DNA of 64,000 nt from Carpediemonas membranifera BICM (Eukaryota > Protista > Fornicata), in assembly GCA_019828565.1 (NCBI GenBank), contig JAHDYR010000009.1:1-64000 (forward strand), written 5' to 3'. The position numbers were made by a program, and so were the translations under genes. Below, in pieces: positions 2,333 to 23,776 of this stretch; the first letter of the stretch is position 1; each line of letters opens with the position of its first letter. Below the pieces are notes generated by a model. The model made no database searches. It saw only the letters and a list, made by a program, of their open reading frames with translations, and was not told the origin of the DNA.

Positions 2333-2449
2333 TGTCACGTTGTGTTAGCTGTCCCAATCAGTTCTTTTATGATTGGTCAATGATCGTCAAAGTCAATTTA
2401 AAGTTAGTTCATCGTTTCCCTTCGGTGTTCCTGTCCCCTGCCCGTCACA
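2333..2449 (+). repeat. Putative 3' LTR of element Z (~117 bp)
   Basis: TG...CA ends, preceded by a purine tract, right edge exactly where element A's RNase H frame breaks. The partner LTR is not in the window. Confidence 0.6.
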
Positions 2450-3620: not shown

Positions 3621-3681
3621 TGTCATAAGGCATCCACGTCCGCAGTTTATGTAAATGTTCCAATCTCTTCGCCCCAGCACA
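3621..3681 (+). repeat. 5' LTR of element B (61 bp)
   Basis: TGTCATAAGG...CCCAGCACA, identical to 8146-8206. Confidence 0.95.
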
Positions 3682-3697
3682 GTGATCACTTTCCGAA

Positions 3698-6600
3698 ATG
3701 AATAATTGGATTCCGCCATCACTATCGGACTTCTCTAGAGAGTCCGTTCGCGCGTTCAAACGCGCCCTCACGTTCGCGCAGAAGCATGCTCCTACCACAA
3801 CCGTCATAACGGCTTACGAGTGCCTCACCGAGGATCAAGTCAGTCATGTCCGATTTGTCCGCAACGTCGACGTCGAAGCACTCAACGACGCAGAACTTCT
3901 CGCCGAAACCACCGCTCTTTCTTTCCCGAGAACCCTTGAGAAAACCATCCAAGAAATCCGGGCCCTCACGCAGGACCGAACCAAGTCCACGATCGAGGCC
4001 GTATCTCGTCTCATGGCTGAGACCGAGGAGCTGCGCTCCCACGCCCATGCCCTTCTCAACGCCGAGCTCGGCGCCAAGCCAGAGCCCGAGCCCGCCGAGG
4101 TGGATGAAGACGAGGCCGCCCTCAGCAAGGTCATCACCCAGAAGCCAGACAGCACGCCGAGTGAGCAGGACACCCCGAGAAAAGCCAGCCCCACCCGCGG
4201 ACTCGATAAGATCATCGCCAAAGCTTTTTATCGCCGCCCTTCGCCCGGTCTCACTTGCCAACCGTATTCAGCAAAAGTGGGACCTCTCTGGCGCCCGGGA
4301 CATCGATAGCTTATTTGTGCACACGCGCGAGCTCATACTGCACGCCATTGACGCCCGCGAAGTCCTCGGAAGCGTGATTCAAGACATATCCATCACATCC
4401 TCCAGCACGAGCTCCATCACGAGCTCCAGCACTGGCCCGAAACATAGCCAGAACGCCAACACCAGATCCCGCCGCGAGCGCCGGCGCCCTCCTCCATACG
4501 CGTGCTCGTGTGGAGGCATGCACTGGAAGGCTGATTGCCCGCACCGCGGCAGCACGCCCGGACAGCCCCAGGCTACCAAAGGCCACCCCGCCGCGGCCCG
4601 CGACGCCAGACCGGCACCTCAGCCGCAACGCCAGCCCCAAGCGGCCAACAAACCGGCTCAGCCACAGCCGGCACCAGCTGCTCAGAAGCAGCAGCAACAG
4701 TCATCCCAGCAGCCACAGCCTCGCCCCGACGAGAGACGCGCTGGGAACATGGTGCTCCGGGACAGATCCAAGCTGATCAACTCTCGTCCAGGAGTCCACG
4801 AAGTCGAAGTCGCACACAATGCTTGTGATGATGCCTTTATCGAAGAAGTTGCCGCTTCAACTGCATTCTCAGTTAAGGGAGCTGTGAATGACCAAGAACA
4901 GGTGATATTGATCGATAGCGGCTCCGCAATCACGATCATCTCCACAACCTCCGTTAAGACGCTCCAACTCGTCACACATGAGCTTGAAAAGCCATTTACT
5001 GTTCAGTCCGTTACCAATGAGCCCATCCTCATCACTCACTACGTCCAAGCGCGGATCGGACGTTGCCCAGCACATCTGGAAACGTCATCGTCGATCTCAT
5101 CCTCTACATCATGACGCGCGCCACTGAACGTGTGCTCATTGGATGCGACGTGCTTCGCGCGCTCGGTTATCTCTCCGAGAGTGGCCTCCACATCCCACTT
5201 CTTCCGGATTCACGCCCGGAGGACGCCACCGATGTCCTCCCACTCCACAAGTACCTCGACGCCCCCGTCGAGGCCGTCTCCTCAAGCGAGTTTCACACCG
5301 ACGCGTGTGAGATACACGAGCTCTCCACCAAGGCCCAGACCGACGAGCTACATTCGATCCTCCGTCGGTTCGATCACCTATTCGACCCCGTCATAAGCAA
5401 ACAGCCGTGCTCGTCTGCCCCTATGCGCATCCCGCTTTACGACAACGCCCCTCCGATCCGTCTTCGCCCGCGCAACCTACACCCGAAGAAGCTGGAGTGG
5501 CTGTTGCCATACGTCGAGCGCCTGCGCCAGGACGAGATCACACAGCCCTCTGAGGGGCCTTACGCAAGCCCCATTGTCCTGGTCGCAAAGGGCGACGCCT
5601 ACCGTCTCTGTATCGACTACGGCCGCCTCAACTCTTGGACAGTACCCGACCGGCACCCGATCCCCAACATGCGAGAACTCCTCAACCTCGCGTCGGGCTG
5701 CACACGCTTTGCGACGCTAGACCTGACGTCGGGCTACTGGCAGGTGGCCATGCACCCAGACGACGTGCCTAAGACGGCCTTCACCGCCCCGGGCGTCTAC
5801 GAGGAATTCCTCAGGATGCCGTTCGGCCTTTGCAACGCGCCTTCTCACTTCCAGCGGGAGATCGAAGGCATGCTCGCCCCACTGTTGTACAAGGGCGCCA
5901 ACCCCTACATCGACGACATATTCATCTACGCCCGTGACGATGACTCCTTCCTACGCATTCTCCGCGACCTGCTCACACGCGCGGACGCTGCAGGCGTTCA
6001 GTTCAGCGCCAAGAAGGGAGTCTTCGGCACCACCAGCGCCAATATTGTCGGCTTTACGGTCGACCAGGCCGGAGTACACGTCGACCCAGCCAGGACCCAA
6101 GCCCTACGCGATCTACCTGCACCCACCAACGTCCACGAGCTTCGCGTAGTCCTCGGACAGTTCCAGTACCTCGCATCATTCGTTCCCCATACACGACACG
6201 AGTACATGAGACCTCTCTACGATCTTCTGCAAAAGGACCGTCTGTGGGAATGGACAGCGGAGCACGACGCCGCTTTCGACGGCCTGAAGACCCTGTTCAC
6301 TGACGATCTCTTTATCGCACATCCGGACGCCGACGCCGACTGGACGCTCGAGACAGACGCTAGCAACATCGGAGCAGGCGGCGTACTATGGCAGACAAAG
6401 GACGACAAGACACAGGTCCTCGCCTACTTCTCTCACACATTCACGTCAACCCAGTCGCGCTGGGCCACGTGTGAGCAGGAGCTATTTGCCATTGTCTTTT
6501 TGCCTTACACACCCGACCCTGTCACCCCTCCTACGCCTGAAGAGGTTCCTCCTACGGACCGACCACCGTAATATTATTTACATGATCGCCAAGTCATCCG

Positions 6601-8153
6601 AGAACGACAAGATCAACCGGTGGAGACTGACATTAGCAGACTACAAGTTCGATGTCGAGCACGTTCCCGGCCTACAGAACGCAGTCGCAGACGCGCTGAG
6701 CCGCTGCGGTCACTCGACCTCGCCCACTGTCGCAGCCATCACGACTGACTCCCGCTACCATGACACACTCATCAAACACCAGACAGACGACTCTACCGTC
6801 TCCAAGCTGACCGTAGACAGCGACGGTCTTCGCCGCAAGGACGGCCTCGTCGTCATCCCTACTTCAACCGTGTGCAGACCCCTCCGAAAGGAGCTGATAC
6901 AGATCGCCCACAGAGGACACCACGGCGCCAAGGCTACCATCGAACGCCTGAGAGCAGACGGCTATACCTGGACAGGCTGCACAGCAGATGTCGAGGAGTT
7001 CGTCGCCTCATGTGACGAGTGCCAGAAAGCTCGCCTACGCAACTTCGCCGAGGCAGAGCTCCGCACAACAGCAGTGTACAAACCGTTCCACACTGTCGCA
7101 GTGGATACTATTGGTCCAATCCCGGCAGACGCAGTCGGCTCCAGATACATCACAGTTATGGTCGATATGTTTTACTCGCTACACTGAGTTGGCCGCGACG
7201 GACGAGAACACAGCTGATGCAGCGTCAGAGGCCCTCTGGCGCCAGGTGATTACCCGTCATGGGACTCCCCTGTTCATCAAGTCCGACAACGGGCCTGGAG
7301 TTCACCGGCAACGTCGTCAAGGCCCTGCTCGAAAGCGCGGACATCACCCAGCAATTCACCCTCCCCTACCACCCTCAGTCGAATGGGCTGGTAGAGCGTC
7401 GTAACGCGGAGGTCATGAAGCATCTTCGCTGTTTGATCCTCCATTCGACAAGTTCTCCCGTTGGAGCGACCTCCTTCCGGTAGTTCAGCTGCTGCTGAAC
7501 ACAACCACCTGCAGCGCCACTGGGGTCACACCCCACGCCATGCTGTATGGAGACCAACTCGACCCCAGCTCCACAGTCGCTAGAATCCTCCGACCGAGCG
7601 AAAATGACTCGCCCCTTGCCTCAGCCTCAGCCTACATCACTTTACTTCGAGCCCACCTCTCCAAGTTGACCTCTAGGGCGGCCGAGAAGCAGCGCGAGAC
7701 TGTAGACAAGCGCCTCGCCAAGGCCAACGCCGACCTCCAGCCGACTAGCTTCAAAGAAGGCGACCTCGTCCTGCTCAACCGGACGAAGACCCCAAAGCTG
7801 CATGGCTTCGCCGGCCCGTTCAAGATTCTCGCCATCAAGGACAACAACACCTTCAGCTGGTCGACCTTTTCGAGAGCGCCCCCTTCATGGCTCACGTAGA
7901 CCAGGTCCTTCCTTTCAACGCCAAGTCGGGGCTCAGCCGCCTGAAGAACCTCGCCGCCTCCGACGAGCAGACGTACGTCGTGCAAGGCATCGAGAAGCAC
8001 CGTCGCCGCAACGGCACACTGCAGCTCCTCGTCTGCTGGGAGGGCGACTACGATCCCACATGGGAACCCGCTGACGGGCTCCGCCACGTCACTGCGGCAC
8101 GTGACTACCTCAAGTCCCACAAGCTCAAGCTTAAGGGGGGTAGGATGTCATAA
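3698..8153 (+). pseudogene. gag-pol: Element B gag-pol, about seven frameshifts in this assembly
   Basis: ORF pieces give gag with CSCGGMHWKADC, PR (LIDSGS), RT (YIDD), RNase H (LETDAS), IN (VAVDTIGP, SDNG, VERRN) and chromodomain (TYVVQGIEKHR..LLVCWEG..TWEP). The stop TAA 8151-8153 lies inside the 3' LTR. Confidence 0.9.
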
Positions 8154-8206
8154 GGCATCCACGTCCGCAGTTTATGTAAATGTTCCAATCTCTTCGCCCC
8201 AGCACA
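8146..8206 (+). repeat. 3' LTR of element B (61 bp)
   Basis: Identical to 3621-3681, preceded by the PPT and followed by TSD CTGG. Confidence 0.95.
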
Positions 8207-8587
8207 CTGGGAGGACGACGTCGTCAGCCGCTGGCGTAGAGTGTGTGAGCCCAAGCGATAGGCCGTCTGAAGTGAGAACGCCGAGGTCTCTGAGAGTGTC
8301 GCACCCGATTAGAGGACACTGGCGGCCAGGGAGGATGATGAAACGGACGGAGACAGCGACAGGGAATCCGGCGAGGCCCGTGAAGAGGATGGGCGCATCT
8401 ACGGCCTGATTGACGGTGATTGAGCTGCCGTCGGCGAGAATGACCGACACGGGGTCGATGCTGGTGCGGGGGAGCTGCCATATCTTTGCGTAACGATCAC
8501 TCGTGCATGAGATTGCTGCGCCCGTGTCAATGATGGCTTGGAAGTGGGACGTGCCGCATGAGGCGGGCACCTTAAGGGCGTCGGCTC

Positions 8588-8708
8588 TGTAGTCCGTTTA
8601 GGACAAGAACACTTTATGAGGAAAAGAGACGACACCAAAAGTGTCGACAGAAACCTGAAGACTATGTAAATAATGTTACTATGTAAATATTGGGTAAGAC
8701 CCACGACA
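8588..8708 (-). repeat. 3' LTR of element C (121 bp)
   Basis: Direct repeat of 14577-14697 with TG..CA ends. Confidence 0.95.
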
Positions 8709-9363
8709 CCGCCCCTCCATGGACCCCAAAGGGGCCATGGCCTCAGGCGTATGCCACTCGTACTGATGTACGATGAGGGACTTGACCAGTTCCGAGACCT
8801 CCGATGCCACTCATTGGACCGCAGAACTCTTGCACCTTGGCGGGGTACAAGGGTGAATACCTTGTTCAAGTCTGGTGCCAGAACTGGCGATGTGAATCTA
8901 AAAGATTCGGAAAATATCTGTGGATCTCAAAAAATCCGGTCGTGGTACCACTGGTTAGCGCGCTATGTAATATGGATGATCTTACGTGAGGCATTCCGCC
9001 CCTCCACGGTCGTAAAACGGCCGTTAGAATTTGAATAGCTCGAATGAGCGTCTAAAACTGCACATTGTGATGATCGTTGTGCTTCTCTCGGTTTGTACAC
9101 TACGTCGCCGTACTTCTTATATAGCGTTTGAAAAACGCCCTTAGAGGCCTCAATTCGGCTTCGTTCGCGAGTTCTCGCGTTTTTTTGTTTTGGACGAAGC
9201 GACGTTCTCTCTCGCGGCTGTAAAAGCCTTCCTTCGTCATTAATAACATCAGTCGTGCTCAAATTGAGCATAAATACCTGTGTATCCGGATCTGTTAGTG
9301 ATGGTTACGGTTTTCTTTCGAGTCGTTCATTTCCCAGTGAAAACGGGAAGCAACGAACAGTCA

Positions 9364-10596
9364 ATGTCGGACGTTAGTGCACAGATTACGCAGATGTTGG
9401 CACTACTTGACGATGAGAAGGCCCGAACGGCCTTCAAACGGTTCCTCAACCGTTATCTCGATCGCGAGCGCTTCTTCCCTACGGTCAGCGAATACCACGC
9501 TTTGTTCCGCGCCGACACTGCCCGTGGCGCGAGTGTTGCACCCGCTGCCTCTACTGAGGGTCTTGAAAGCGCTCCCGAGGCCTCTCGCTCGCCTACGCCT
9601 TCTCCCAGTAACGACGCCGGCACGGGAGGCGACGACGTGCTTGGCGAGAGCTCTCGGCCCACCCATCAGGATAGTTCGGGCGAGATTGAGGCTGTGCCGA
9701 GCGATGATGACTCCCGACCGACGGGTGGTGACAACTCGGGTTCGGACCAGGAAACGACTGCGCACTTCTCACTGGAGGAGATGATCACGGCTGTTGCTGA
9801 TGCTGGCCTGAGCTACATCACCTTGGACGTCGCTGGCACCCTGGCCGCGCTCCGTGCCGGTATGCTCTACGCATACGGGCACCTCACGGTGACCGAAACC
9901 TCTTCGGTCGTGGCCCGTGACATCTGTCGCGACGGTCTCGTGCTGTTAGCTCTATCACGTGAGTACCACACCCGGGCTGTGCTGGGTCGAACCGGTGATC
10001 CGACCGATCAAGATCTGGTGACTTTGCACCTCAGACGGCTCGACGTGAACTCGCGCACGCTCTGTCATCAGGAGCTGCGTGAGCGGATTCAGCTTCTCTC
10101 GGGACGAGGTTATACGGTCATGACACCTCACCTGCGCCGGGCCATCATGTTGGGTAATGACCCCGACCTGTATGACATGATGATCGTTGGTCACGCTCAG
10201 GGCATTCTTGACTCTGCCGACGTGCGGGAGTTCAGTCGCCAATACATCGAGGCGATCCGGACCCCCACCGGCTTCGGTCATGTGCGTCATTCCCTGATGG
10301 ACAATTTCCAGTTCGTCATCGACGGTGATAATGTTCTTCCGGTCGCGCTCGACTATAACGAGCCACGCCGCTTATACGAGTTGACGGCGATCGTTGGCTA
10401 CCGCTTGCATGAGGGCTCCCTTCGTCTGCTCGTGCACTACGCTCGGCGCGAGTACAGCTCGATTGTCAAGGCGACCGAGACTATCCGTGACAGTCAGGCT
10501 GGGGTCAAGTTCTTCGCTGCTCATCCCGAGTTGGTTCGATACTGCACCCGGTCTGAGGACGCGAAGGGTGCTCTCTGCGGTGGTGTTTTGGAATAA
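9364..10596 (+). CDS. Accessory protein of element C, antisense to pol; C-terminal chromo/chromo-shadow-like domain
   Basis: Uninterrupted 410-aa ORF between pol and the 3' LTR, convergent with pol (33-bp gap). Acidic Ser/Pro linker. C-terminus LYELTAIVGYRLHEGSLRLLVHY..SSIVKATETIRDSQAGVKFF. Confidence 0.75.
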   Translation: MSDVSAQITQMLALLDDEKARTAFKRFLNRYLDRERFFPTVSEYHALFRADTARGASVAPAASTEGLESAPEASRSPTPSPSNDAGTGGDDVLGESSRPTHQDSSGEIEAVPSDDDSRPTGGDNSGSDQETTAHFSLEEMITAVADAGLSYITLDVAGTLAALRAGMLYAYGHLTVTETSSVVARDICRDGLVLLALSREYHTRAVLGRTGDPTDQDLVTLHLRRLDVNSRTLCHQELRERIQLLSGRGYTVMTPHLRRAIMLGNDPDLYDMMIVGHAQGILDSADVREFSRQYIEAIRTPTGFGHVRHSLMDNFQFVIDGDNVLPVALDYNEPRRLYELTAIVGYRLHEGSLRLLVHYARREYSSIVKATETIRDSQAGVKFFAAHPELVRYCTRSEDAKGALCGGVLE

Positions 10597-10629
10597 GATA
10601 AATGTCTGAACTGAGGCTCTGCTGAAGAT

Positions 10630-13600
10630 TTACAGACCGGCTTGCCTAGCCTCGTCTGACTTCAGGTATACGTCTAGTGCCTCAAGGTCCTTAACTGACG
10701 AATAGTCTTGCCAGGTGGCCTCTTCGTCCTCACACCCGGCCCAGTGGACGAGGTATTCCCGTTTGGACATCGGGCCTCGACCCCGAGATCGGCTGATTCG
10801 CTCGACTTCCCACTCGTCGTCAGCCGTTGCTGCGAGTGCTTTGATCTGGTCCTCTGTCAGTCTGCCTGGATTGAACTTCCGAACTCTCGATGCGTCTACC
10901 GTGATCGCTTTCGAGTTGTCCTTCTCGGACAGGTCTAGGACCTTATACGCGACAACGACACCGTGTTGTTTCACTCCGGCGAGCCTTCGCATTGGTCCTC
11001 TCCACCCAGGTGATAACTTGTTCGGAGGTCTAGAGGGGTACTTGACCAGGACGAATCTGCTAATGATCTCGTTTCTCGATGCGGTGGCCTTGGCGAGTGC
11101 GTCCTCTCTCATTGCTTGAACTCGGCTGCTGGCGAGCTGGATAGCTGCTGCGGCCGCCTCTCTGTGGGACTCGCTCGCGCTCGCGGTACTGGAATCGGTC
11201 ACATACACGTTCTGTGGTATCCTCAGGTCGTATCCGAGTACTATCTCGGCTGGAGACAGACGTGTTGCCGTGCGCGGTGATGAATTGACGATGAACTGGG
11301 CGACAGGTAAATTCTCGATCCAGGTTGACCCTCTGAGCTGGAACTTGCGTGCCTTAAGGATGCGTAGCACCTGCTGGTTGGCGCGCTCTACCATCCCATT
11401 GGATTGCGGGTGGTGAGCCGTGGTAATATGGATCTTGAACCCCATCTCATCTGCGATGCGCTTGAAGAGTTGGTTCTTGAACTCTGGTCCTCCGTCGGAT
11501 TGGAGAACCTCAGGGCACCCGAAGCGCAATATCCAGTTGTTGACGAGGGCGTCTGCTGCTGCCGCGCCGGTGGTATTCGAAGACGCGACTAGCTCCGTCC
11601 ACCGACTGCACATGTCGATCATGACTGTAATGTAAGCTTTGCCGTCGACGGCTGGGAACGGCCCCATCGTGTCGACTGCCACCCTACGAAATGGGCGATC
11701 TACGGCTGTGTGTAATCCTGCTGGGCTGTCAACCGGGAGGCGTCTAATCACCTGGCACACCGGGCAGTTTTCGATGACCTTGTTGACCGTCTCACGCGAC
11801 ACTGACTTGCCTTGGTCTTTGAGTCGTTCAGTTACAACGCGTCGTGATAAGTGGGCCCCAGCGGTGAGGTGCTCTGCTTCGACGTCGCCTTCTGATGCAG
11901 GCTGTATGACGTACACTCGCGATAAGCCGTCAGCCCCACCGTTATCGAGGCCGGCTACGTGCTTGACGTCGAAGTCCATGTCGGACATCGCCTCCGCCCA
12001 TCTGCGGACCTTGGCGTTAGTCGACTTGTACATGTAAATTAGGTTGCGATGGTCAGTGAGCAGGGTAAACTTCCCCCAGGAGAGGTACTTGTTCCACCGC
12101 TTGATAGCAGCTACGATGGCGAATGCTTCCTTCTCACCGACGGACCACCGCGATTGCACTTGTTCGAAGGCCTTGCTCATAAAGCAGACGGGTTGACCTT
12201 CTTGCAACAGCACCGCGCCATAACCTACTCCTGATGCATCGGTCATGATGGTGTGCTCCTTGGACGCATCGAAGATGGCGAGTGCTTCTGCTTGGGCGAG
12301 CAGTGTCTTGACTTTGCGTAATGCTTGCTCTTGCTCGTCGCCTCCCAGCGGGATCTTGGCGGCCATCGCTTGTGTCAAGGGGTGAACGACTTCTGCGAAC
12401 CCGGGGACGTGGTCCCGGAAGTAGTTGAGGAACCCGACGAGCGCTTGCATTCCTTTGACTGACTTGGGCATTTCGAGATCGAGGATGTCTTGAATGCGGT
12501 CTGCTGCGATGCGTTGACAACCATGGGATATGACCCTGCCCAGGAACTCGACCTCGGCCCTCGAAAACTGGCATTTGTCACGGTTGAGCTGTAACTTGAC
12601 CTGTCGGGTGCGCTGCAGAACGCTCTCGAGGTTTCTGAGGTAGTCTTCCTCGTCTTCCCCGAAGACGATGATATCGTCGATATATATGTAACACGCGTGA
12701 CCGACCAGTTCGGCGAACGCTGACTCCATGGCGCGCTGGAAGTGGGCACCCGCGTTCCTCAGCCCGAACGGCATTCTGGTATATTGGTATTGACCGAGGA
12801 TGGTAGTGAATGCGGTGTACTTCCTGCAGCGTTTGGTCAGCTCGACCTGGTGATACCCAGATGACAGATCTAATGTGGCGAAGATCTTCTTGTTCGGTAG
12901 TTGGGCGATCACCTCGTCGATCATCGGAATCGGGTAGTCGAAGGTGGGGGTGATCTCATTGATCTGCCGGAAATCCACCACGAAGCGCGACTTCCCGCCC
13001 TTCTTCGGCACCGTCATGGCTGGGGATGCGTATGGAGAGTTGCTCTTCTCAATAAAACCCTTAAGGGACAGCTCGTCAATGTGCTCCCGTATAATGTCTA
13101 CCTTGGCTGGCGGGACGAAGTATGGTCTAGCGTTGACTACACGGTCTTCGCGCAGTATGAGGTCGTAAGGCTCAAGGCGGCTAGGTTCGCTCCGGTCCTC
13201 GAACACGTCGCTGTAACGTCTTATGAGCTTGGCTTGTCGGTCGACGCTGGTCTGTGACATGGTGAAGAGTGGAGCCTGGTACTTGTACACGTCTGGAATC
13301 TCGACCTCGTCATCGTCACGCTCGTCGGCGTATGCCTGGGGAAGGATTCCCAACGACACCATGTCGGGGTAGCCGATAATCATGTCGAATTCCGTGTCGA
13401 GGAGCAGCATACGTGGCTTGTAGCTGCACGCCTTGGGTGTAAACGCCGAAGGTAACAGTCTCACGTCCCCCTCGACTGCGCCTTGTGCATGGAGGATCCC
13501 CTTGTTGGCGGTACGTATCGGAATAATCTCAGAGCTAACTCTGGGCAGCTTGGACGCCCACGTGCTCTTAATAACGGTGACTCCGGCGCCTGAATCAAGG

Positions 13601-14558
13601 AGAGCGGAGAGACTATGGCCATTGATCTGGACTTTGATCAGCGGCACGGACGACTTGGACTCAGTCTTCCCAGTAGACTGAGATGACTCGTTCTTAGACT
13701 TGTCGGAACTCAAAACACACAAGCACTTGGAGGATTTACAGTAATCCTCCAGGTGGCCGAGACGGCCACACTTCTTGCAGGTGTGTTTGGCCTTCTGCAC
13801 TTAAACACGGAATGGCCTCTTCCCCCGCAGTTGTAGCAGGTGTAACCCGAGTAGTCTTTTGCGGGTCTCTCCTTTTTGATCGTCTTGGGCTTGAGATCCT
13901 TCTCAGAGGAGGGCTTCTTCGGGGTGAAGGGAGCGTCGTGTCTGCGCTCTTGACGAGATGAGGCGGTTTGACGAGAGGGAGCGTCCTCGAACGCGCTCAG
14001 CAGGTTGCGCGACTCTTGGACTTCACGTGCTAGGGCTAGGACCGCGGGCATGGCCTTCTCCAGAGGCTGATCCTCGATGAGCTCTTGAATGCGGTACATG
14101 GCCTTGGGGTTACTCTTGAAGGCACGAGTATACGTCTCTTTGAGGTTGTCCTCGTTGAGCGACTTCCCATCGAAGAGGGACAGGAGGAGGGTGAACTTCC
14201 GGTTGATACGTGCTACCTGCACCGTGTCGAAACTGTTGGCGCGCAGGCGGAAGAGCTGGAGGCGTGAAGTCTTCGCGCGCGGTTGAAGGGCTTGGCCGAG
14301 CCGCTTGAGGGTCCTTTGATCCTTGAGATCGCGAATGTTCTTCTTTGAGGCTATAAGAGGGGTATGCTCGTCGCTATCGTCAGGATCAGTGTCCAGAATG
14401 GTCGTAATGAGGTCTTGAACCGCGCTATCGATGAGATCGGTGATATCTCGATGGCCTCCATAGGCCCGATAGTCTCGGAAGGCCTCGGCGAATGCGATCA
14501 GTGCCTCTACTGAAGGAATTGTTAGTAGAGGCGGGATTAAGCGTTTCTTATCGTTCAT
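10630..14558 (-). CDS. gag-pol: Element C gag-pol (gag with two CCHC knuckles, PR, RT, RNase H, IN, chromodomain); one frameshift near 13800
   Basis: MNDKKRLIPP start; CYNCGGRGHSVFKC and CKKCGRLGHLEDYC; LLDSGA; YIDD; MTDASG; VAVDTMGP/SDGG/VERAN; EWEVERI..YLVHWAG..TWQ. The 1056-aa pol portion is open. Confidence 0.92.
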
Positions 14559-14576
14559 GGAAGGAATTTCTAGAAA

Positions 14577-14697
14577 TGTAGTCCGTTTAGGACAAGAACA
14601 CTTTATGAGGAAAAGAGACGACACCAAAAGTGTCGACAGAAACCTGAAGACTATGTAAATAATGTTACTATGTAAATATTGGGTAAGACCCACGACA
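14577..14697 (-). repeat. 5' LTR of element C (121 bp)
   Basis: Identical to 8588-8708; the gag ATG follows after 18 nt. Confidence 0.95.
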
Positions 14698-14942
14698 GCT
14701 CCGCGGCTTTTCGCGAAGTTGACCTGTGTCTGGGGACCACGTGACTGACGAGAGGGGCAATCTCGGTCGAAGTGGTTGCCCTGACAGTGGCGACAGGGGC
14801 GTGCCGGCTGCCGGGCGTTGTCGCCCGAGGGCCCGGTGTTGCCGTTATTGTTGGCTGGAGTGGAGCTCTGGGCGTAGTAGCCGTAGCGGAGAGCCTCCTC
14901 GCGGGCGTTGTCGTCGCGTTTGGCAACGCGGAGGGCAAGGCG

Positions 14943-15050
14943 TGTTGTAACGATGCGCTAATTTATTTCGACACACTGGTGTCGTCTCGGACCAAGTAGG
15001 ACCAAGACGACACCCATAAAATATATAAATATTAATACGGTATTGCGACA
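14943..15050 (-). repeat. Putative 3' LTR (~108 bp) of element D2
   Basis: TG..CA ends, adjacent minus-strand PPT TGGGGGGAGGGGTAG (15051-15065), AT-rich, abuts element A gag sequence. Confidence 0.65.
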
Positions 15051-15640
15051 CTACCCCTCCCCCCCACCGAGAGTATTAAAGCCACTTTGCAAATTGTGTC
15101 AGAAACCCATCCGATGGTCGAGGATCTTCCTTCAGGGTGGAACCGGGTTCGACCCCCGGAGTCACCATATTTTTCATTGAATGGGTCTTAACCTGCACGA
15201 CCCAGCGATGAGTCGAAAAGAAGGAGGAGGCGAAGGACGGAAAAAAATGGGAAGGGTGTACTCGATATGCCCTTGCAGCGGCCTACCTCCACCTCCTGTC
15301 TGAGGTCTGAGTACTTCGTGTGGTGGCCGAAACACGAGTCGATGGCGAAAGAGTGAATGGGGAAGATGATCGCAACGAGAGCTGAACCCGAGGGAAATGG
15401 GGAGATATATAAAGGTGATTGTACTGCTGTAGCACTAGGTTCTCACGGGCATTGGTTCCCCGCAATGCGCAAAAATTTGGAATCAATCGACTATCGATTA
15501 ACTGGGGAGGTTTGGACCGAAATTCCCCGCAAAAGAGGTGTAACAAGCATGTGTAGAGCGATATTGGGCGGAAGAATTACTTCCTGGAGGGTAATTGAGC
15601 ATAATTGGCTGCTCGCCGATTGAGTTGCCTAATACTGCGG

Positions 15641-16790
15641 CTAGGACCGGGCCCGCCACCTGCGACGAATACGAGCCAGAGTCGGCTCTAGTGCAGGGTT
15701 CTCGCGCAAATATTAGTCTAGGGCCTCCAGCTGGTCGGTGTCTCTGGTAAAACTAATCCAAGAGTCTTCGCTCGGCTCGTAGCCCAGCCAGTGGACTTTG
15801 AATTCGACCTTGGACCCCTTGTTTGAGACCCTGTGCTTGTAGACATTGTCGACCACGTACTCACCGCACTCGGCGGCAAGTCTAGCGATCAGGGCTTGCT
15901 CGTCCTCTGGCGTCTCGACAGGAATGAGTCGCTCATCGCTGACCAGGACCTCTGCCAGCGACACTAAGTCGCGAACCACGTGCGTAGCGGGCGATTCGCC
16001 GGCTCGTACAACCTTCATCGGGCCCCGGAGGCTGGTGAGCAGCTTGGGAGCTCTGCCAACGTAGCGGAGGAGTGCGAAGGAGCCATCCGGGAAGCTCGGG
16101 GGTGTGTCGCTGTCCTCGCCGCTCTTGTTTCGTTCGCTATACCGTTGGAGATGAGCCTTGGCTTGCAGACGGCGGGTAGTAAGGGCGTCGCGGAACGCCT
16201 TCAGGCAATCGGCTTGGCCCGCCGACATTTCCTTAAATAGGGCCCACACCCGCTCGTATTGCGCGACTGAAAACTGCTTGGAGTCGGATCCCGAATTGCC
16301 TGTCACTAGGCGTAAGGGGGCTTGCCCCGTGGCCCGTGTTGGCCGTGTATTAATGATGTACTGCACTAAAGGGAGGAAAGGAACCCAGTCATAGTCCTGG
16401 CTGTCAAATAGTAAACCCCGCAACAGACGAAGGACTTTTCCATTCGTGCGTTCAACAATTCCGTTGGAGGCTGGGTGATGTGGGGTCGAGTAACGATGCT
16501 TGAGGGAGAGGATCCGGTTGACTTCAGCGTCCACTTGGTTCCTAAATTCCGGTCCGCCATCAGTTTGAAGTAGCGCTGGTTTCCCAAATAGGGCCCAGAC
16601 TTCTAGCATAGCTTGGGCTGTCTCGGCGGCCGTGGTTGATCTCACCGGCTTCAGTACCACGTATTTCGTGAAGACATCTGTGAAGACCAAGACGCCCTTG
16701 TACTCACCGCTAGCCCCCAGGGAGAGTTGGGTTGGCACACTGCCACAAGAGGTTCTCAGCGCACGGTTTCTCCTTCGTCTTCGCTTCGCT
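15641..16790 (-). pseudogene. Element D2 integrase core plus chromodomain
   Basis: LVFTDVFTKY, LQTDGGPEF, SNGIVERTN, RGPMKV, EYVVDNVYKHR..FKVHWLGYEPSEDSW. Premature TAA at 15713-15715 (LD*YLRENP). Confidence 0.85.
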
Positions 16791-16809
16791 GCTTGATAGC
16801 AGGGATATG

Positions 16810-18336
16810 GAAGTTACCGCCATGTTGCAAAGCTCCTCGACCTGTCGCTTCATCTCTTCCACTTCGCCCTCGCCGTAGCGGTAGGGCGGTACGTTGACCA
16901 CTCTGTCATGTCGAAGGTCCAACCCGAATGGCTCCACATCGGCCGGCTCATCAATACCTCCGAACAACCCCCCTAGCTTCGCTAACACCTCTTCGACCTC
17001 CACGGTCAGGTCCATTATCACCGGCTTGGCATCATTGGTCTTCTGCGCGCTCGACAGGTAGACTTCTTCGTCAAACTCATCGCCCTCCAGCTCCAGGAAC
17101 GTCTTGGTCCCTTCTCCAGCTGTTGGTAGGTGGATTTACACCAAGCCCAAGGCCGTTAGCGTCGGGAATCCGAACACTATCGGCGGCTTAAGCCTCGGTA
17201 GGATGTAGAGTACTATCTTCGCCGTAGTACGGCGTCCTGTCTTCGGAATAACTCCTAGATCGATGTTGACTTCGATCTTCTCATGCACGTTGTAAACCGT
17301 CCCGCCTTGCAATCGAACCTTCACGTTTGTGGGGATAATTTCATCCGCGAACCCCAACTCGTCGATCAACGTCTTGTCGACAAAATCTGCGTCGGCCCCG
17401 GTGTCTAGCAATGTGTTAACGTCGCGACCGTCTACACACACCACGGCTTCAGGACGCTTCGCGGTCCCCTGGGCGACCAAAGAGGAAGAAGACAGAGAGA
17501 AACAAGCCTGAGTTTTTACACCCTTCTTGCGTTCGTCCCTCTGCTTCTTCCAGCACTTTGTGGCATCGTGGCCCACCTTGTTGCAGTAGGGGCACTTGGT
17601 AGACGCCTTGTCTTCATGCTTCTTCTTGGTCTTCTCGTCCTTCGACTCAACTGACTGACGCTGCGCCTCACGTCTACCCTTCTCAGCCTCCAGGGCTTGC
17701 TCAAAAGCCACCTTCATGGTCTCCTCCAGATCCTTGCTCTTCTTCTTGGCGCCGATTCGCTCTCTCAGGACTTGATAGCGGACTCCAGCGACGAACGCCT
17801 CCACGAGTTGCTTGGCTTGAGGCTGCAGCTCGCCGAAGTAGGAACACGTCTCCTTGAATGTCAGCACGTAATCGGCCATGTTCTCGACGAGATTGCCCGA
17901 CTCGGGGCAATTCAGCTTCTTCAGCCATTCGATGGCCTCTAGCTCGTCGAGAGGTTGGAACATCTTGTTAATCAGGTCGATAAACTCCTCGTTCCACTCC
18001 GTCTCACGATCGGGGTCATGCTCATCCATCGGTTCATCCACCACCTGGAGAAAAGAGCCCAGCATGGGAGAACGGCACTTAAACGTTTCGAGCACTTCGT
18101 TTGACACCAGGTCGAAAATAGCAATCGGATCACGGCACCTAGCGGCATAAGCACGCCAGGACTTAACCATATGGCGCCACTCCGCCACAGAGACCTTATT
18201 AAGGTAGGGTGCGTAGTTCAGTACTGTTTCCGGTACTACCATGGCAATATATATTGTTGCAGCAGGAAACACAGAGAGTGATTTAATTGATCCGGGGTAA
18301 ATCGGTCATCAATTGATTACATGAGCGAATCTGACA
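16810..18336 (-). mobile_element. Element D1: 5' LTR, gag (CCHC) and protease, truncated just before RT
   Basis: Gag from ATG 18242 with CPYCNKVGHDATKC; PR LLDTGA; pre-RT segment VNVPPYRY..EMKRQVEEL, then no RT. Putative LTR 18255-18336 with TG..CA ends (outer end uncertain). Confidence 0.8.
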
Positions 18337-19149
18337 AAACGAAGATGATAAGATTCCAAAGGCGCAAGCGACCAGAGGCGTGAAAGAAGGACAGCTACGT
18401 GGTCAAGAAAGCCTCTAGTCGATTTGGCGTGAGGTCAGGTTCGTCAATCAGTTGATTGATTTTGACGGGACGACCGAAAACCGCAAAGAACGCCACTCAT
18501 AGGGCGGAAGGAGAGCCGTAATGGGACTAAATTCCCTGTACAAAACACCAACAAGGACATGAAGGGCTTTACAAGGCGCCCGAGGCTCAGCGTGGACGAG
18601 GGCCAAGCAAGATTGTCTGACGAGACAAGTGCGTCTCACATAGACTGAACCCCGCGGACAGGAGTGATGACACACACGCCAGGGGAGCCCCAAAGAGTGT
18701 AGCTTCAGGAGGCCATGATGGCAGACACTGCTGGGCGAGGTATGCTACCGACCGATGTCGAGATAGTAACGAGAGGAGAAGAGCGCTAAGAACAAACAGT
18801 TAGCTCACAGACGAGAAGTTAACAATCTAATGATCTCAATTTCCGTGATAGAGTTGCTGAAGAGTTGGCCAGCACGATGAGCTCATGGTTACATTGAGTG
18901 AGAACAGAAGAAGGTGATAGAGAAGGGTTGAAGGCAATAGGAATGATCATTTGCATGTTGAGCCAGAAACTACTGCACCAGGACAAGGTAAGCAGCAAGG
19001 CCGTAGGAGACCTGTGGTTGAACAGCGGTGATGACCCCAAGACAAGGTTGATGCTGAGATCGAGTTTACGATTTTGAGATTCGATGCAATCAGGCTTGGT
19101 AAGATTGATAGAAGATCTTTATGGTATCGAAGGAAATGTAAGACTCAAG

Positions 19150-19220
19150 TGTACGCAGAGGTACCTATAAGTGCAGTTTATGTAAACACATCCATTCTCT
19201 TCACGCTTAGGGCTCCCACA
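19150..19220 (+). repeat. 5' LTR of element E (71 bp)
   Basis: TGTACGCAGAGG...GGCTCCCACA, repeated at 23598-23670. Confidence 0.93.
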
Positions 19221-19236
19221 GTTATAACTGTAACAA

Positions 19237-22200
19237 ATGGACGTCCACATAACACTCCCAAAGTGTGAAGAGACAGGGTACGAAGCTATTAGGAAGTTCC
19301 AGCACGATTTCCGCCTCGCCAAAACAGTCCATCCGGCGCTTAAGGCATTCCTCTGCCTTTCGCTCCAGGTAACCGACGAACTACGCTTCAGGTTTGATGT
19401 AGAGCCTGAATCCATGTCCGACGACGACATCTTTAGCCATCTCTTCCAACTATCTCGGCCACTCGACGCTACGCTCGCTTTACAAGCACTACAACGTCTC
19501 TCCTTCCCATCTGGAACCGACAGAGACTTCATCCACAACCTGGGGCTGTTCAACGCCCGGTTCAAGCACGCAGTGGGCCAGATTTTTGAGTTCGAGCAAG
19601 AATTCCTCACGGAGGAGAAGGACGGCAAGGTGTCTGCGGACCTCACTCCAACCGCGAAGGGTTACCATCGCCTCGCGGTGGACGCGTACGTCGCCTGCCT
19701 GAAGCAAGCGAAGGCGGTCTCCGCCGCCAACGTCGCCCGCGACCTCGAAGTTGTGCTGACTCTCAAGAGCATTAAGCGAAAGACCGATGAGGTCCTCTCA
19801 AAGGCCATGAGCATCGCTCTCGAGCAGGAAGAGCTGCACTACAAGGCTTCTCGTCTCGACTATGTCCGGAAGAGCGCCGTCACGCCGCGGCCGCCGACCG
19901 GCGCCCCCCCGCCAGGCCAAGGCCACAACCTACGGCACGCTCGCCGAGGTGGCGGCTCGTCTCAGGGCCAAGGCCAACGCCAGCAGGACAAACCCCAGGA
20001 ATCCCGACAGGCTCAACAGACCCGCCAGCAGGCAGGGGCGGACGGCCAGCAGACACAGCAAGGCCAGGGCCCGCAAGGCCAGTCGTCCAAGGCACAACAG
20101 AGCCAGGGTCAACAAGGTCAACCTGCCAAGGCGCAACAAGGTCAGGGCCAGCAAGGCCAGCCGGCCAAGGCGCAGCAAGGTCAACAAGGTCAGCCAGCCG
20201 GACAGAGCAAGCTTAAGTTCACGCCACACTGGTCCCGCGGGCAGAGCGGGCAGATGGAGCGCAGCTTCCGCCAAGTTGATGACGTCACGTCCGAGATGAT
20301 CATCGACATCCAGATCAACGGCCAGGCAACCAAGGCCAAGGTCGACCCGGGAGCCACAGTGAGCTGCATCTCAGAAGCCACAGTCGCCACCCTCCAGAGG
20401 ATCGTGCCCCTCAGCACCGCTCCGTCCAGCGTTGTGGCACTTAACGCGTCGCAGGAAGTGATCACCACAGGCCTCGCGCTGGTGGTCAACCTCCAGCTTA
20501 CCTCTCTGGACCGTAGCCCGACACTCGAAGCACAGCCACTGGCCATCATCCGAGGCCCAAAGCACAAGGTGCTCATCGGCGCTGACGTCCTCTCCGCCCT
20601 CGGTCTCATGAACGCGCAGGGCATCCACATTGACCTGCACAGGGACGATGACGACGAGGACAATGACGGACTCCCCGACCACGCCTACCTCGATGACACG
20701 CCGCCAGGCCGTGTCGATGACGTCACCGCCGACGCCGAGGCAACCCAAGCAGTCGACGAGGTGCACGTCAACCCCGACTTCCCGCACTATCAAGAGCTCA
20801 AGGCGATCATCATACGCCACAAGGCAGTCTTTGGCCCCTTTGACCCGGGCGGAGCGGATCTGCCCCCAGTCACCATCAGACTGAAACCTAACGCACGCAC
20901 GCCACACCAAAAGCCCAGGCCGCTTCATCCAGATGACCTCCGCGAGGTCCACAACCATTTCGACGATCTCAAGGAGCGAGGCATCTGCCGTGACGCCGAT
21001 GGCCCGGTCGCCAGCGCACTCGTGGTCGTCCGCAAGAAGCCCAACGAGAAGGGCGAGCGAGAACTACGCCCATGTGGAGATTACCGCCAGCTGAACGAGG
21101 CCACCATTCATGACAGCTTCCCTATGGCCGACGCGAAGGCGTTCCTCGCCGGTGTGGCCGGCTCCAAGTGGTTCTTCACCTCAGACGTCAAGCAAGGATT
21201 CCACCAACAGCCCATGTGCCCCGAAGACATTTATCTCACGGCCATCGTCATGCCCGGCCGGTTTGTTGAATACAACTTCGCGCCATTCGGGCTCCGCAAC
21301 CTGCCCAGCCAGTTCTAACGTGGCATGGCAGACGCCATCTCCGACTTAGCCCGAGATGAGACCCGCAACTACGTTGACGACGTGTTCGGACGAGCTCGCA
21401 CCCCGGACGAGCTTTGCGCCAAGGTCGGCCGCTTCCTCGACAAGATGGAGCAACGTCGCATCCGCCTCAAGCCCTCGAAATGCTTCTTCGGCTACTCGGA
21501 GGTCGAGGTGTTGGGCACGATCGTCACCCCAGGCGGCCTCAAGGTTGCCCCATCTCGCATCGATAGCATCATACGCATCGAGGCCCCCACCTGCGTCACA
21601 GCCCTCCGGGCGTTCATTGGCCAGATCGCATGCATCGCAATGTTCATGCCAGACGCTCAACGCCATCTCAAGCCGCTGCACACTGCCGTGGCGCAAGGAG
21701 ACCCGCTGCAGTGGGGCCCCGATCAGGCCAAGGCGTTCAACAACATCAAGGAACTCCTGACAGGCGAGATGATGCTAGTACACCCATACCTCGAGAAACC
21801 GTGGGTGTTGGAGACCGACGCCAGCCTGACAGGCGTCGGCGGGGTTCTGTGGCAGGTGATGCCGGAGGGACCGCCCCGAGTCATCAGCTATTACTCCAAG
21901 CTATTCACGCCAGTGCAGTCACGCTGGTCGACGTTCGACCAGGAGATGTTTGGTATCGTCTGCCTCTCCAGGCCCGACTTAGCGCCATACCTGAAGGCCC
22001 ACGCGCATCTGACGCTACGTACGGACCACCGCAACCTCATCTACCTGACGGTCAAGGCACCCGAAACACGCAAGCACACGCGCTGGCTCGCGATCATCGA
22101 CGAGTTCCGCTTCAACATTGTTCACGTCGCAGGCGAAGACAACAAGGTCGCAGACTTCCTGAGCCGGTACACGCCTGACAAGCCAGCTGTAGCCATCGAC

Positions 22201-23620
22201 GACGTGGACACGTCGGTCACCGAGACCATCCGCCAGGCCCAGCAACGAGTTCCGACCGCCGAGAGAGACAGCTGGGCCGGCCCACACTTCACGATCGCGG
22301 GGGGAATCGTCAAGAAGGACGGACGTTTCCTCGTCCCGAGCACCGCAGCCGAGCTGAAGAGCTCCATCTTCGCCGACGCCCACCGCTACCATCAAGGCGA
22401 GAGGACCACGGTCGAGAACATACATGGCCTCTCCCTGACCTGGATCGGGATCCACGACGACGTCGCCACCCGAATCCGGCACTGCGTTCTCTGTCAGAAG
22501 ACCCGCCTCAACAACTTCATGAAGCGGTCGCTCCACACGACCATGACGACAACGCCTTTTCACACGGTCGCCATCGACACCGTGGGCCCACTCTCCCTAG
22601 ACTCACAGGGTAACCGCTACATCTTCGTCATGACAGACCTCTTCACGAGGTGGACCGAGCTGGTAGCAGCCCCGTCCAATGGCGCCCAGCCAGCCGCCTA
22701 TGCGCTCTGGCACGGCGTGTTCTGCCGGCACGGCCTTCCGGCCAACATCCTCAGCGACAACGGCACGGAATATGTCAACCGCGACATCCAGGAGCTGACC
22801 GCGTACCTCAAGGTGTCCCACCACCGCACGATCCCATATCACCCGGCCAGCAACGGCCTCGTGGAGCGCCGGAATAAGGAAATCAAGCGGCACCTCCGTC
22901 CTGTGCGCCTTATTCGACCAGTTTGACCGATGGTCGGTCGCCGTGCTCCCCTACGTGCAGCTCCTACTGAACACGACGCCACACACCACGACCGGCTTTG
23001 CACCAATGGCCATGTTGAACGGCCTACAGGCGACCCCGCGTCGATTCGCCCTCGAGGGGGAAGAGCAAGCCGAACAGCCAGACGACCCGATCACCGACGC
23101 GGCCGCCTACGTCCAAGCCCTGGACGAACACCTACAGTCAGTCGCCGAGCGAGCCGCTGACTCACAGGCGGACCATCTGCGCCGCCGCAAGATCACTCCA
23201 GACGACCCAGTCGCACCTGGCGATATCGTCCTGGCCCTGAACCCACGGCCGTCCAAGCTGCACGGCCACCTTGGCCCGTTCAAGGTCCTCGCAGTGCGCG
23301 ACCACCACGCCATCAGCATCTCGCCACTGCTTGGCGGCGAGGAGAAGGTCATCCACGCCGATCAGGCAATCCGAGTCGAGGCCACCGAGCCCAACGGCCA
23401 ACTGGCCGCTCTCCAGGCCGGTGACGCCGAGGAGTACTACGTCGAAGCCATCCTGGGCGTCAATGAAGCCGATCCCAGCCACCTTATCGTCAAGTGGCTC
23501 GGCTACGACGAGACTTCCAGCGAGGGTCCGGACAACGAGTCCGTCATGGCAGCCGTACCCACCCGTGAGTGGCTGCAGCGGACTCGGGAGGGCAGGATGT
23601 ACCAGCAGAGGTACCTATAA
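19237..23620 (+). pseudogene. gag-pol: Element E single-frame gag-pol with one nonsense codon and one frameshift
   Basis: Gag, PR (VDPGA) and RT in one frame. TAA 21316-21318 falls in the FQR motif. YVDD, LETDAS, VAIDTVGP/SDNG/VERRN. Frameshift near 22900. Chromodomain EYYVEAILG..LIVKWLGY. Stop inside the 3' LTR. Confidence 0.9.
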
Positions 23621-23670
23621 GTGCAGTTTATGTAAACACATCCATTCTCTTCACGCTTAGGGCTCCCACA
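23598..23670 (+). repeat. 3' LTR of element E (73 bp)
   Basis: Direct repeat of 19150-19220, followed by TSD CAAG. Confidence 0.93.
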
Positions 23671-23776
23671 CAAGGAGCAAAGAGAAGCTTCGAGAGGAGA
23701 AAGGGGAGTGTCATGGATTAGACCACCCATGATTTACATAGTTACATGAGCCTATATATTGTGCAGGATATGCACC

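Follow-up and report, generated by a model that had tools for sequence, protein, structure and literature searches.

Which primer starts reverse transcription in the LTR retrotransposons of the free-living metamonad Carpediemonas membranifera? Priming of minus-strand DNA synthesis is a defining step for every retroelement, and for LTR elements only two primers are established: a tRNA of the host and, as in Tf1, the 5' end of the element itself. The window analysed here, a stretch of 64,000 nucleotides comprising positions 1 to 64,000 of contig JAHDYR010000009.1 from strain BICM, contains four elements, B, C, D and E, for which a reading of the sequence alone had reported a perfect palindrome at the position of the primer-binding site (PBS) and had proposed membership in different LTR retrotransposon families. 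All four palindromes were found at the reported positions, and the assignment to different families is supported. The elements are composed as follows, with positions referring to the window.

3621..3681, plus strand: element B 5' LTR, 61 nt, TGT..ACA, identical to 8146-8206; TSD CTGG at 3617-3620
3681..3690, plus strand: element B palindromic PBS-equivalent AGTGATCACT; first base is the final LTR base; gag ATG at 3698
3698..8132, plus strand: element B coding region (gag, protease, RT, RNase H, integrase, chromodomain) from Pfam matches; a frameshifted copy
8133..8206, plus strand: element B polypurine tract (8133-8145) and 3' LTR (8146-8206); TSD CTGG at 8207-8210
8588..8708, minus strand: element C 3' LTR, 121 nt; polypurine tract 8709-8718; TSD GAGC (plus strand gctc) at 8584-8587
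10630..14558, minus strand: element C gag and pol (protease, RT, RNase H, integrase, chromodomain) from Pfam matches and ORFs; gag ATG 14558-14556
14566..14577, minus strand: element C palindromic PBS-equivalent ATTTCTAGAAAT; first base is the final LTR base
14577..14697, minus strand: element C 5' LTR; TSD at 14698-14701
18245..18256, minus strand: element D palindromic PBS-equivalent CAATATATATTG, sharing the LTR-terminal CA; gag ATG 18242-18240
18255..18321, minus strand: element D 5' LTR, 67 nt; 20 other genome copies match query 180-246/247 or start there
19150..19220, plus strand: element E 5' LTR, 71 nt; TSD CAAG at 19146-19149
19218..19231, plus strand: element E palindromic PBS-equivalent ACAGTTATAACTGT, sharing the LTR-terminal ACA; gag ATG 19237
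19237..23597, plus strand: element E coding region (protease, RT, RNase H, integrase; three frames) from Pfam matches, with the polypurine tract 23586-23597 at its end
23598..23670, plus strand: element E 3' LTR, 73 nt, with a 2-nt indel relative to the 5' copy; TSD CAAG at 23671-23674

The LTR ends were set independently, by 4-bp TSDs in B, C and E and by the 20 other genome copies in D. The Pfam order RVT_1, RT_RNaseH, rve, Chromo is complete in C and partially represented in B, D and E, and L002, a sister copy of element B, carries an intact ORF of 1483 aa. All 22 elements feature 4-bp TSDs, TGT..ACA ends and a G-rich tract ahead of the 3' LTR, and their LTRs are tiny (55-121 nt). Elements of the B, C, D and E type are autonomous Ty3/Gypsy chromoviruses of C. 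membranifera with miniature LTRs. For one intact element of 4.7 kb, a search for RNA runs gave none, and exact look-ups of the element's proteins matched no record. The very short repeats had brought DIRS/Ngaro-type split repeats with a tyrosine recombinase into consideration, which are excluded by the DDE integrase (rve) and the TSDs. Elements bearing such a palindrome fill parts of the genome.

The palindrome overlaps the end of the LTR, by one base in B and C, two in D and three in E, and its symmetry axis lies after position +4 beyond the LTR end in B, D and E and after +5 in C, all of which agrees with the overlap and the axis at 4-5 nt described in the sequence-only reading. The gag ATG begins at +13 in D, +17 in B and E and +19 in C, in place of the 12-18 nt given there. 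Just 2-14 nt separate palindrome and gag ATG in most families, so that no other PBS fits. The position is fixed in 13 families of this genome as well as in D: the final LTR A is part of the palindrome in 12 of the 13, the D palindrome covers the terminal CA, and the final A is likewise included in most elements from other sources. Exceptions are L007/L008 and L059, where the palindrome begins at +2 instead of -1. The location is tied to the end of the LTR, a constraint that the primer position alone imposes, and this supports a priming site. In element interiors and the host portion of the window, the background rate of palindromic 10-mers is about 1e-3 per position. A single family would have one centred at +4 to +7 with a probability of no more than 4e-3; for the 18 families tested together the figure is about 1e-43. 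Measured against this background, the frequency of the palindromes is far above chance, and a chance origin is excluded.

The arrangement extends well beyond the window. At 20 further loci of the genome, which together with pattern searches and DNA searches made up our genome-wide census, each readable family has a perfect palindrome of 10-14 nt at the same place, and that of element B (AGTGATCACT) recurs in the copies or relatives L001, L002, L004 and L005. Related loci, some of them retrieved with a four-sequence alignment as query and including those from other assemblies and from lake and soil metagenomes, were placed in a pol tree calculated by FastTree from unnamed loci alone. The palindrome might have been missing from other families of the clade; within the pol tree, in the well-supported clade to which these elements belong, 38 of 39 members carry it. 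The sister clade (L095, L100) has ordinary tRNA sites of the TGG type, and the trait was therefore gained or lost once and then retained.

Searches for the known types of primer were negative. TGG does not occur within 8 nt of the LTR in any of the 13 families of this genome that were scanned, B, C and E included, nor was it seen past the LTR of D on inspection by eye. Complementarity to the 16 tRNA species represented by 30 tRNA loci of this genome, an incomplete set, reaches at best 5-7 nt, which is the chance level; priming by these 16 sampled species is ruled out. The longest complement of LTR positions -1 to +24 inside the LTR amounts to 4-6 nt (P 0.25-1.0 against shuffles), and the palindrome itself matches the LTR at the null level, which rules out cis self-priming of the Tf1 type. 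The sequence-only reading had claimed the absence of both a tRNA-type PBS and a Tf1-type complement within the LTR, and these results support both claims. A second hairpin arm of the GalEa type (CHSeq2-like) was also sought, and the best downstream partner of the palindrome within 90 nt matches 6-7 of 10-14 positions, no better than random internal windows; such an arm is ruled out as well. By its position, the palindrome points to a possible tRNA-independent start of reverse transcription.

More than 20 different palindromes are found among these elements. Each of the five variable positions is occupied by 3-4 types of Watson-Crick pair, and neither a mismatch nor a G.U pair was detected in about 100 palindrome pairs. 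The sister families L017 and L020 differ by a double change from G/C to A/T, and in a census of one palindrome pair across the genome 53 symmetric copies stand against 3 asymmetric ones. The earlier suggestion that symmetry kept in spite of varying sequence reflects selection on structure is thereby borne out, compensatory changes being present at each variable pair, and to judge from this covariation pairing itself is the target of selection. The absence of G.U is what one would predict for a site that has to anneal as DNA as well, during plus-strand transfer. The centre of the palindrome is symmetric in every family and leaves no loop, a feature that favours pairing of two molecules over fold-back. 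Self-duplexes of the palindromes are predicted at -11 to -21 kcal/mol; AT-rich duplexes of 10-12 nt are weak.

How could such a site prime? The most likely answer, in our view almost an even bet, is that a self-complementary site stands in for the tRNA PBS, namely a perfect palindrome of 10-14 nt that primes after pairing of two RNAs and cleavage. Two element RNAs would pair antiparallel through their palindromes, the first base of which is normally the last A of U5, and the duplex would at the same time hold both genomes together. The element's RNase H would then act on this RNA duplex as the Tf1 enzyme does on its own, cutting one strand at the 3' edge. That the RNase H domains of these elements cleave an RNA duplex is assumed by analogy with Tf1, which, according to work by Levin in 1995-1996, reportedly primes with its own RNA once RNase H has cleaved an RNA duplex. 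Cleavage would expose a 3'-OH that is base-paired as far as the final LTR A, and its extension into U5-R would yield minus-strand strong-stop DNA. After hybridization of the primer's own leader to the new DNA, RNase H would trim this leader such that the palindrome alone stays RNA, and copying of the remaining palindrome RNA by the plus strand would recreate the site. The primer would thus be copied into progeny, and a one-sided mutation could be transferred to the other half; under this proposal, the many different yet always perfect palindromes would be accounted for by such transfer.

The palindrome might instead serve solely as a signal for dimerization or packaging, or as a DNA site for a dimeric protein, while another primer is used, be it a tRNA fragment with short complementarity or a small RNA. 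Palindromes close to the PBS are indeed known from retroviral dimer initiation sites and from Ty1 PAL, and our tRNA comparison covered just 16 species. We nevertheless regard this as unlikely, as the palindrome coincides exactly with the PBS position and, in nearly all families, includes the final base of the LTR, the short distance to the ATG leaves no space for a separate PBS, and TGG is lacking. Moreover, a site acting only as an RNA dimer would tolerate the G.U pairs that are absent here, and more than 20 different palindromes cannot all suit one protein or one host RNA.

Fold-back priming in cis, which has been proposed for the 'Conserved Hairpin Site' of fungal GalEa elements, would place the palindrome at the tip of a U5-leader hairpin, the 3' arm of which is cut and primes the same RNA. 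U5 pairs with sequence behind the palindrome in the predicted folds of L004, L011, W_C, L051, L008 and others, z averages -0.73 across 20 families, 45% of families against 24% of swapped controls have short extensions of 3-4 bp past a small bulge (P about 0.02), and a bulge at the LTR junction has been described for GalEa too (PMC5445492). From these models a general U5-to-leader stem across families receives weak support. Flank-to-flank pairing is absent in W_B, L017, L019, L055 and L057, however, a lone palindrome of 10 nt yields a hairpin stem of mere 3 bp, and the CHSeq2-like partner was not found within 90 nt. A hairpin loop does not need the symmetry that the central 4 nt exhibit in every family, and fold-back priming appears distinctly improbable to us. 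The probability is lower again, and in our view small, for a Tf1-like mode in trans, in which a second transcript starting at the last LTR base, and therefore having the palindrome as its first 10-14 nt, pairs with the full-length RNA and is cut off as primer. A start near the palindrome is conceivable, as the LTR motif G(C/T)A(G/C)TTTATG lies 26-45 nt ahead of the LTR end and is similar to GTTTAT, a motif present in the window 14-60 nt before host ATGs, but the host motif is based on about a dozen genes and two start sites would be required.

Priming from a duplex of two element RNAs, the reading that we prefer, can be set against three known systems. The closest precedent for a palindromic site at the PBS position is provided by the fungal GalEa Copia elements, which lack a tRNA PBS and possess a 9-bp sequence that forms a palindrome together with the last A of the 5' LTR (Donnart et al., 2017, PMC5445492); the site was left without an explanation of its mechanism (PMC5445492). 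Common to both groups are a perfect palindrome directly past the 5' LTR that includes the final LTR A (in GalEa, A followed by CTGATCAGT or by CTAATTAGT), the absence of a tRNA PBS and, in B, D and E, the axis after +4. On the other hand, GalEa belongs to the Copia superfamily with integrase before RT, whereas the C. membranifera elements have the Gypsy domain order. In GalEa a conserved CHSeq2 arm follows 12-41 bp downstream, complementary but for a fixed A/A mismatch, and our elements lack it; GalEa LTRs span 138-311 bp as compared with 55-121 nt, and two palindromes dominate there as opposed to more than 20 in our elements. Elements of the Tf1/sushi group (the Tf1, Tf2, Maggy, Skippy and Tcn1 clade) resemble ours in being chromoviruses without a tRNA primer. 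Their primer is derived from RNA of the element itself, once RNase H has cut an RNA duplex at the PBS, a step for which a counterpart in C. membranifera is proposed by analogy. The Tf1 PBS is complementary to the 5'-terminal ~11 nt of its own transcript, so that its partner resides in the LTR, while the C. membranifera site is self-complementary. Self-priming of Tf1 has been described (PMC5445492, PMC6317226). Retroviral dimer initiation sites and Ty1 PAL, palindromes near the PBS (discussion of PMC5445492; PMC3592414), share with our elements a short palindrome in the 5' leader, and dimer initiation sites pair two genomic RNAs, as proposed here. Dimer initiation sites differ in residing in a hairpin loop apart from a tRNA PBS; the C. 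membranifera palindrome takes the PBS position, is not located in a loop in predicted folds and is not accompanied by a tRNA PBS.

Our literature search for a palindromic PBS or similar returned nothing beyond GalEa. The novelty suggested by the sequence-only reading is therefore reduced by GalEa, where the same geometry was published in 2017 (PMC5445492). As regards the interpretation as a whole, the different LTR families, the lack of a tRNA or Tf1 site and the selection on structure stand, and priming by the palindrome, pairing of two packaged RNAs through it and cleavage at its 3' edge are proposed.

Annotation tools that demand a tRNA PBS, or that set the minimum LTR length at 100 bp, will miss these elements. 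Covariation and the symmetric centre turn what was an oddity into a testable priming hypothesis, and a GalEa-like geometry now marks a large and old Gypsy clade in a free-living metamonad and many uncultured eukaryotes. More tentatively than the mechanism itself, we suggest that LTR retroelements may possess a third priming route beside tRNA and Tf1-type cis priming, in which a symmetric duplex, formed by two co-packaged genomes through their palindromes, is cut into a primer. Dimerization and priming would then be one act, and the site would renew its own symmetry in each cycle. Such a route would define a deep, protist-wide clade of chromoviruses and would have arisen independently in the fungal GalEa Copia elements.

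The window (C10:1-64000 of an assembly with 69 contigs and 24.24 Mb) begins with a nest of LTR retrotransposons that fills its first 23.7 kb, and the remainder carries host genes (NIF phosphatase, alpha-amylase, MACPF, kinase, DEAD helicase, DUF229). The Pfam domains of the elements follow the order aspartyl protease, RVT_1, RT_RNaseH, integrase (rve, H2C2) and chromodomain, and because of this set and order they are assigned to the Ty3/Gypsy chromoviruses. Split repeats of the DIRS/Ngaro type, suspected early, were excluded by the DDE integrase and the target-site duplications (TSDs). LTR pairs of elements B, C and E were obtained by self-comparison of the window, their exact ends being read from the flanks, and the LTR end of element D was set by 20 other genome copies that have the same start base or match the 67-nt stretch alone:

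B, 3621-3681 and 8146-8206: LTRs of 61 nt, TSD CTGG, polypurine tract at 8133-8145
C, 8588-8708 and 14577-14697, minus strand: LTRs of 121 nt, TSD GAGC
D, 18255-18321, minus strand: LTR of 67 nt, no 3' LTR within the window
E, 19150-19220 and 23598-23670: LTRs of 71 and 73 nt, TSD CAAG, polypurine tract at 23586-23597

The nest sits at the contig end (1-23700); B is inserted in a minus-strand element (RT ORF 2445-3722) and C is likewise embedded in TE sequence. In D, gag-protease (17136-18272) is directly followed by an integrase-chromodomain ORF (15713-16738), RT-RNase H being absent, and an additional RNase H-integrase-chromodomain fragment lies at 231-2027.

The perfect palindromes that the sequence-only reading had noticed at the four 5' LTR ends, where a tRNA primer-binding site (PBS) is expected, are indeed there. 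They overlap the final one to three LTR bases and have their symmetry axis after +4 or +5, +1 being the first base after the LTR. The gag ATG begins at +13 to +19, and no TGG was found 3' of the LTRs of B, C and E (by scan) or D (by eye). Protein searches of the genome revealed hundreds of related copies from numerous families, the most divergent of them sharing 37% RT identity. Of 20 sampled stretches of 10 kb, 18 harbour a complete element, and a truncated copy is present in L013. The complete elements comprise 4.4-4.9 kb, with LTRs of 55-104 nt (pair identity 98-100%), 4-bp TSDs, TGT..ACA ends and a G-rich polypurine tract, and in most of them a single gag-pol frame is open already at the LTR end. 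All 13 families, window elements B, C and E included, possess a perfect palindrome of 10-14 nt at the junction, examples being GTGATCACT, GTAATATTACT, ATATCGATATT, GAATCGATTCT and ATACTAGTATT after a terminal LTR A and GTATCGATACTG after CA. The last LTR A is part of the palindrome in 12 of them, and in the family of loci L007 and L008 it starts at +2. In the L007 stretch (G000:C10:204620-214619), an element with TSD AGCG interrupts a tandem array of ~722-729-nt units, of which at least four flank it at one end and one at the opposite end (L007:1-3356 and 7788-8509).

The per-position frequency of palindromic 10-mers is 9e-4 in element interiors and 1.1e-3 in the window's host region, in agreement with the expectation of 4^-5. 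Their frequency at LTR ends is far above this background, the chance of a palindrome centred at +4 to +7 in all 18 families tested being about 1e-43. The palindrome at the LTR end is thus genuine, strongly non-random and much more widespread than first noted. That symmetry is kept while the sequence differs is borne out by compensating pairs: where the axis follows +5 (12 families), the outermost pair is invariably A-T, formed by the LTR A and the T at +11, each of the five inner pairs exhibits three to four Watson-Crick types, and neither mismatches nor G.U pairs occur. Predicted self-duplex energies range from -11 to -21 kcal/mol. Close relatives on the pol tree have the palindrome in common (e.g. 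L002/L003/L004), and a compensatory G-C to A-T exchange distinguishes the sister families L017 and L020. A search of the whole genome for the pattern of this site, RTATCGATAY, yielded 18 G..C, 35 A..T and three asymmetric copies (G000:C50:66712-66728, C67:811395-811411 and C54:486414-486430; A..C twice, G..T once), the latter being either decayed or intermediates between the two symmetric forms.

Contigs encoding the nearest proteins in public collections carry the same junction palindrome. The terminal LTR A is followed by ATAACGTTATT, ATAGTTAACTATT and GTTAGCTAACT in GCA_002919055.1 (LTRs of 73-91 nt) and by TTGAATTCAAT in GCA_040384025.1 (LTR of 270 nt, GC 44%), while metagenome contigs feature GCGAATTCGCTG after CA, ATACTAGTATT after A, and CGAACGTTCG at +2. 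A metagenome contig scan returned 80 relatives, in which the palindrome adjoins the terminal CA wherever LTRs or the pol-to-LTR-to-gag order are readable. In a pol tree of 46 rows (FastTree, midpoint root), all own-genome families and these external relatives fall into one clade of 39 rows. As anticipated for other families of the clade, 38 of these rows have the palindrome; the remaining contig is without one. Readable sites in the sister clade (seven rows, local support 100%, branch 0.84) are of the ordinary tRNA type (TGGTAGCGAG two bases past CA in L095, TGGTATCAGA one base past CA in L100) and thus also provide a positive control for junction reading. The palindromic site is stably kept throughout a deep clade of chromoviruses, the hosts of which have GC contents of 37-61%. 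Several environmental relatives contain very long AT-rich palindromes of 16-20 nt at the LTR end, built on AATAATTAATTATT (L065:14-29, L092:5278-5295, L123:304-323 and L099), with conserved arms (AATAA..TTATT) and a variable centre in this subclade. Next to a palindrome-bearing chromovirus in GCA_002919055.1 (PPCM01001310.1) resides a different retroelement (L054:1-3330), the RVT_1 protein of which shows a weak match to Dam (adenine methyltransferase); DAM-carrying retrotransposons in Carpediemonas, Dysnectes and Kipferlia are the subject of a 2026 preprint (10.64898/2026.05.21.726589).

Comparison of LTR positions -3 to +22 with 16 isoacceptor species, an incomplete set from 30 tRNA loci of the genome, gave complements of 5-7 nt at best, the same as for shuffled sites, and since more than 20 different perfect palindromes exist, these as a whole are not tRNA complements. 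A tRNA primer was rejected for these 16 species, and the suggested tRNA-independent priming is well supported. Self-priming of the Tf1 type was also discarded: in keeping with the sequence-only reading, the longest complement of the site inside its own LTR amounts to 4-6 nt, which is chance level. Full-text literature searches for a palindromic PBS found no description in Gypsy elements; they did reveal one clear precedent, the fungal GalEa elements, for which the same palindrome geometry is already published, but in another superfamily, Copia (Donnart et al., 2017; PMC5445492). According to its authors no described model fits, and a paper on bivalve TRIMs says the same. Plant elements of the Tcn1 and TAR lineages are predicted to self-prime as well (PMC6317226), but in the manner of Tf1. 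A GalEa-type hairpin was rejected as no second arm was found within 90 nt downstream of the palindrome. A U5-to-leader stem around the palindrome is predicted in some families (L004, L011, window element C, L051) and absent in others (mean z -0.73 in 20 families); short extensions past a small bulge are weakly enriched (P about 0.02), and the stem was not relied on as a general feature. The GalEa sequence ACTGATCAGT, preceded by AGCA, occurs exactly, ~160 nt upstream of the RT match, in two metagenome contigs (L108:4962-4971, L111:3725-3734) from a more distant Gypsy relative; its position looks internal and the match may be due to chance.

The position of the minus-strand primer determines where an LTR ends. 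As the palindrome is locked to the very base that the primer dictates in dozens of families, we infer that it is a functional PBS; beside this locking, a pure dimerization or protein site, with the minus strand started by some other primer, appears unlikely. The symmetry is perfect through the centre and leaves no loop, pointing at two molecules of the same sequence as partners, most simply two genomic RNAs paired through their palindromes. Fold-back of one RNA in cis to form the primer is accordingly rather doubtful, and it is improbable that a second transcript start supplies a Tf1-like primer.

Priming by two paired RNAs could proceed as follows. Tf1 RNase H cuts an RNA duplex, which frees the Tf1 primer. 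By analogy, a cut in one strand at the 3' edge of the palindrome would create a 3'-OH within a duplex that reaches the final A of U5, and extension from this 3'-OH would give strong-stop DNA. The primer's own leader would hybridize to this DNA and be removed by RNase H, so that the palindrome alone would be left as RNA and be copied by the plus strand like the tRNA 3' end in other elements. HIV-1 RNase H leaves the last ribonucleotide; if the same applied here, the primer would template the terminal LTR A, and the start of the palindrome at -1 would be accounted for. That G.U pairs are absent is consistent with a site which has to anneal in DNA form, too, during the second strand transfer. Copying of the primer into progeny would carry a one-sided mutation to the other half, offering a route to many different yet perfect palindromes, and the asymmetric RTATCGATAY copies would be the kind of intermediate expected. 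Two-RNA priming with a cut at the 3' edge is, on this analogy, the likeliest of the mechanisms considered, plausible though still tentative.

With 55-121 nt, the LTRs are very short for autonomous elements and, to our knowledge, at or below the shortest described; several families have only 55-67 nt (examples of short LTRs are window 3621-3681, 18255-18321 and 19150-19220, L020:1734-1788 and L009/L010). These elements keep exact 4-bp TSDs and 98-100% identical LTR pairs. A motif like GCAGTTTATGTAAA is common to most LTRs (e.g. window 3643-3656 and 19173-19186), and C has TATGTAAA copies on the opposite strand. Among host genes of the window (24-64 kb), a poly(A)-signal-like NGTAAA is located 3' of many stop codons, and many ATGs are preceded at a distance of 14-60 nt by a promoter- or initiator-like GTTTAT(G); the LTR motif may combine promoter and poly(A) signal in one. 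Elements with such short LTRs would escape LTR finders set to a minimum of 100 bp, and the whole clade would be overlooked by standard finders, which require a tRNA PBS and LTRs of 100 bp or more. For retroelement biology, the finding offers a clean way to test what may be a third mechanism of priming.
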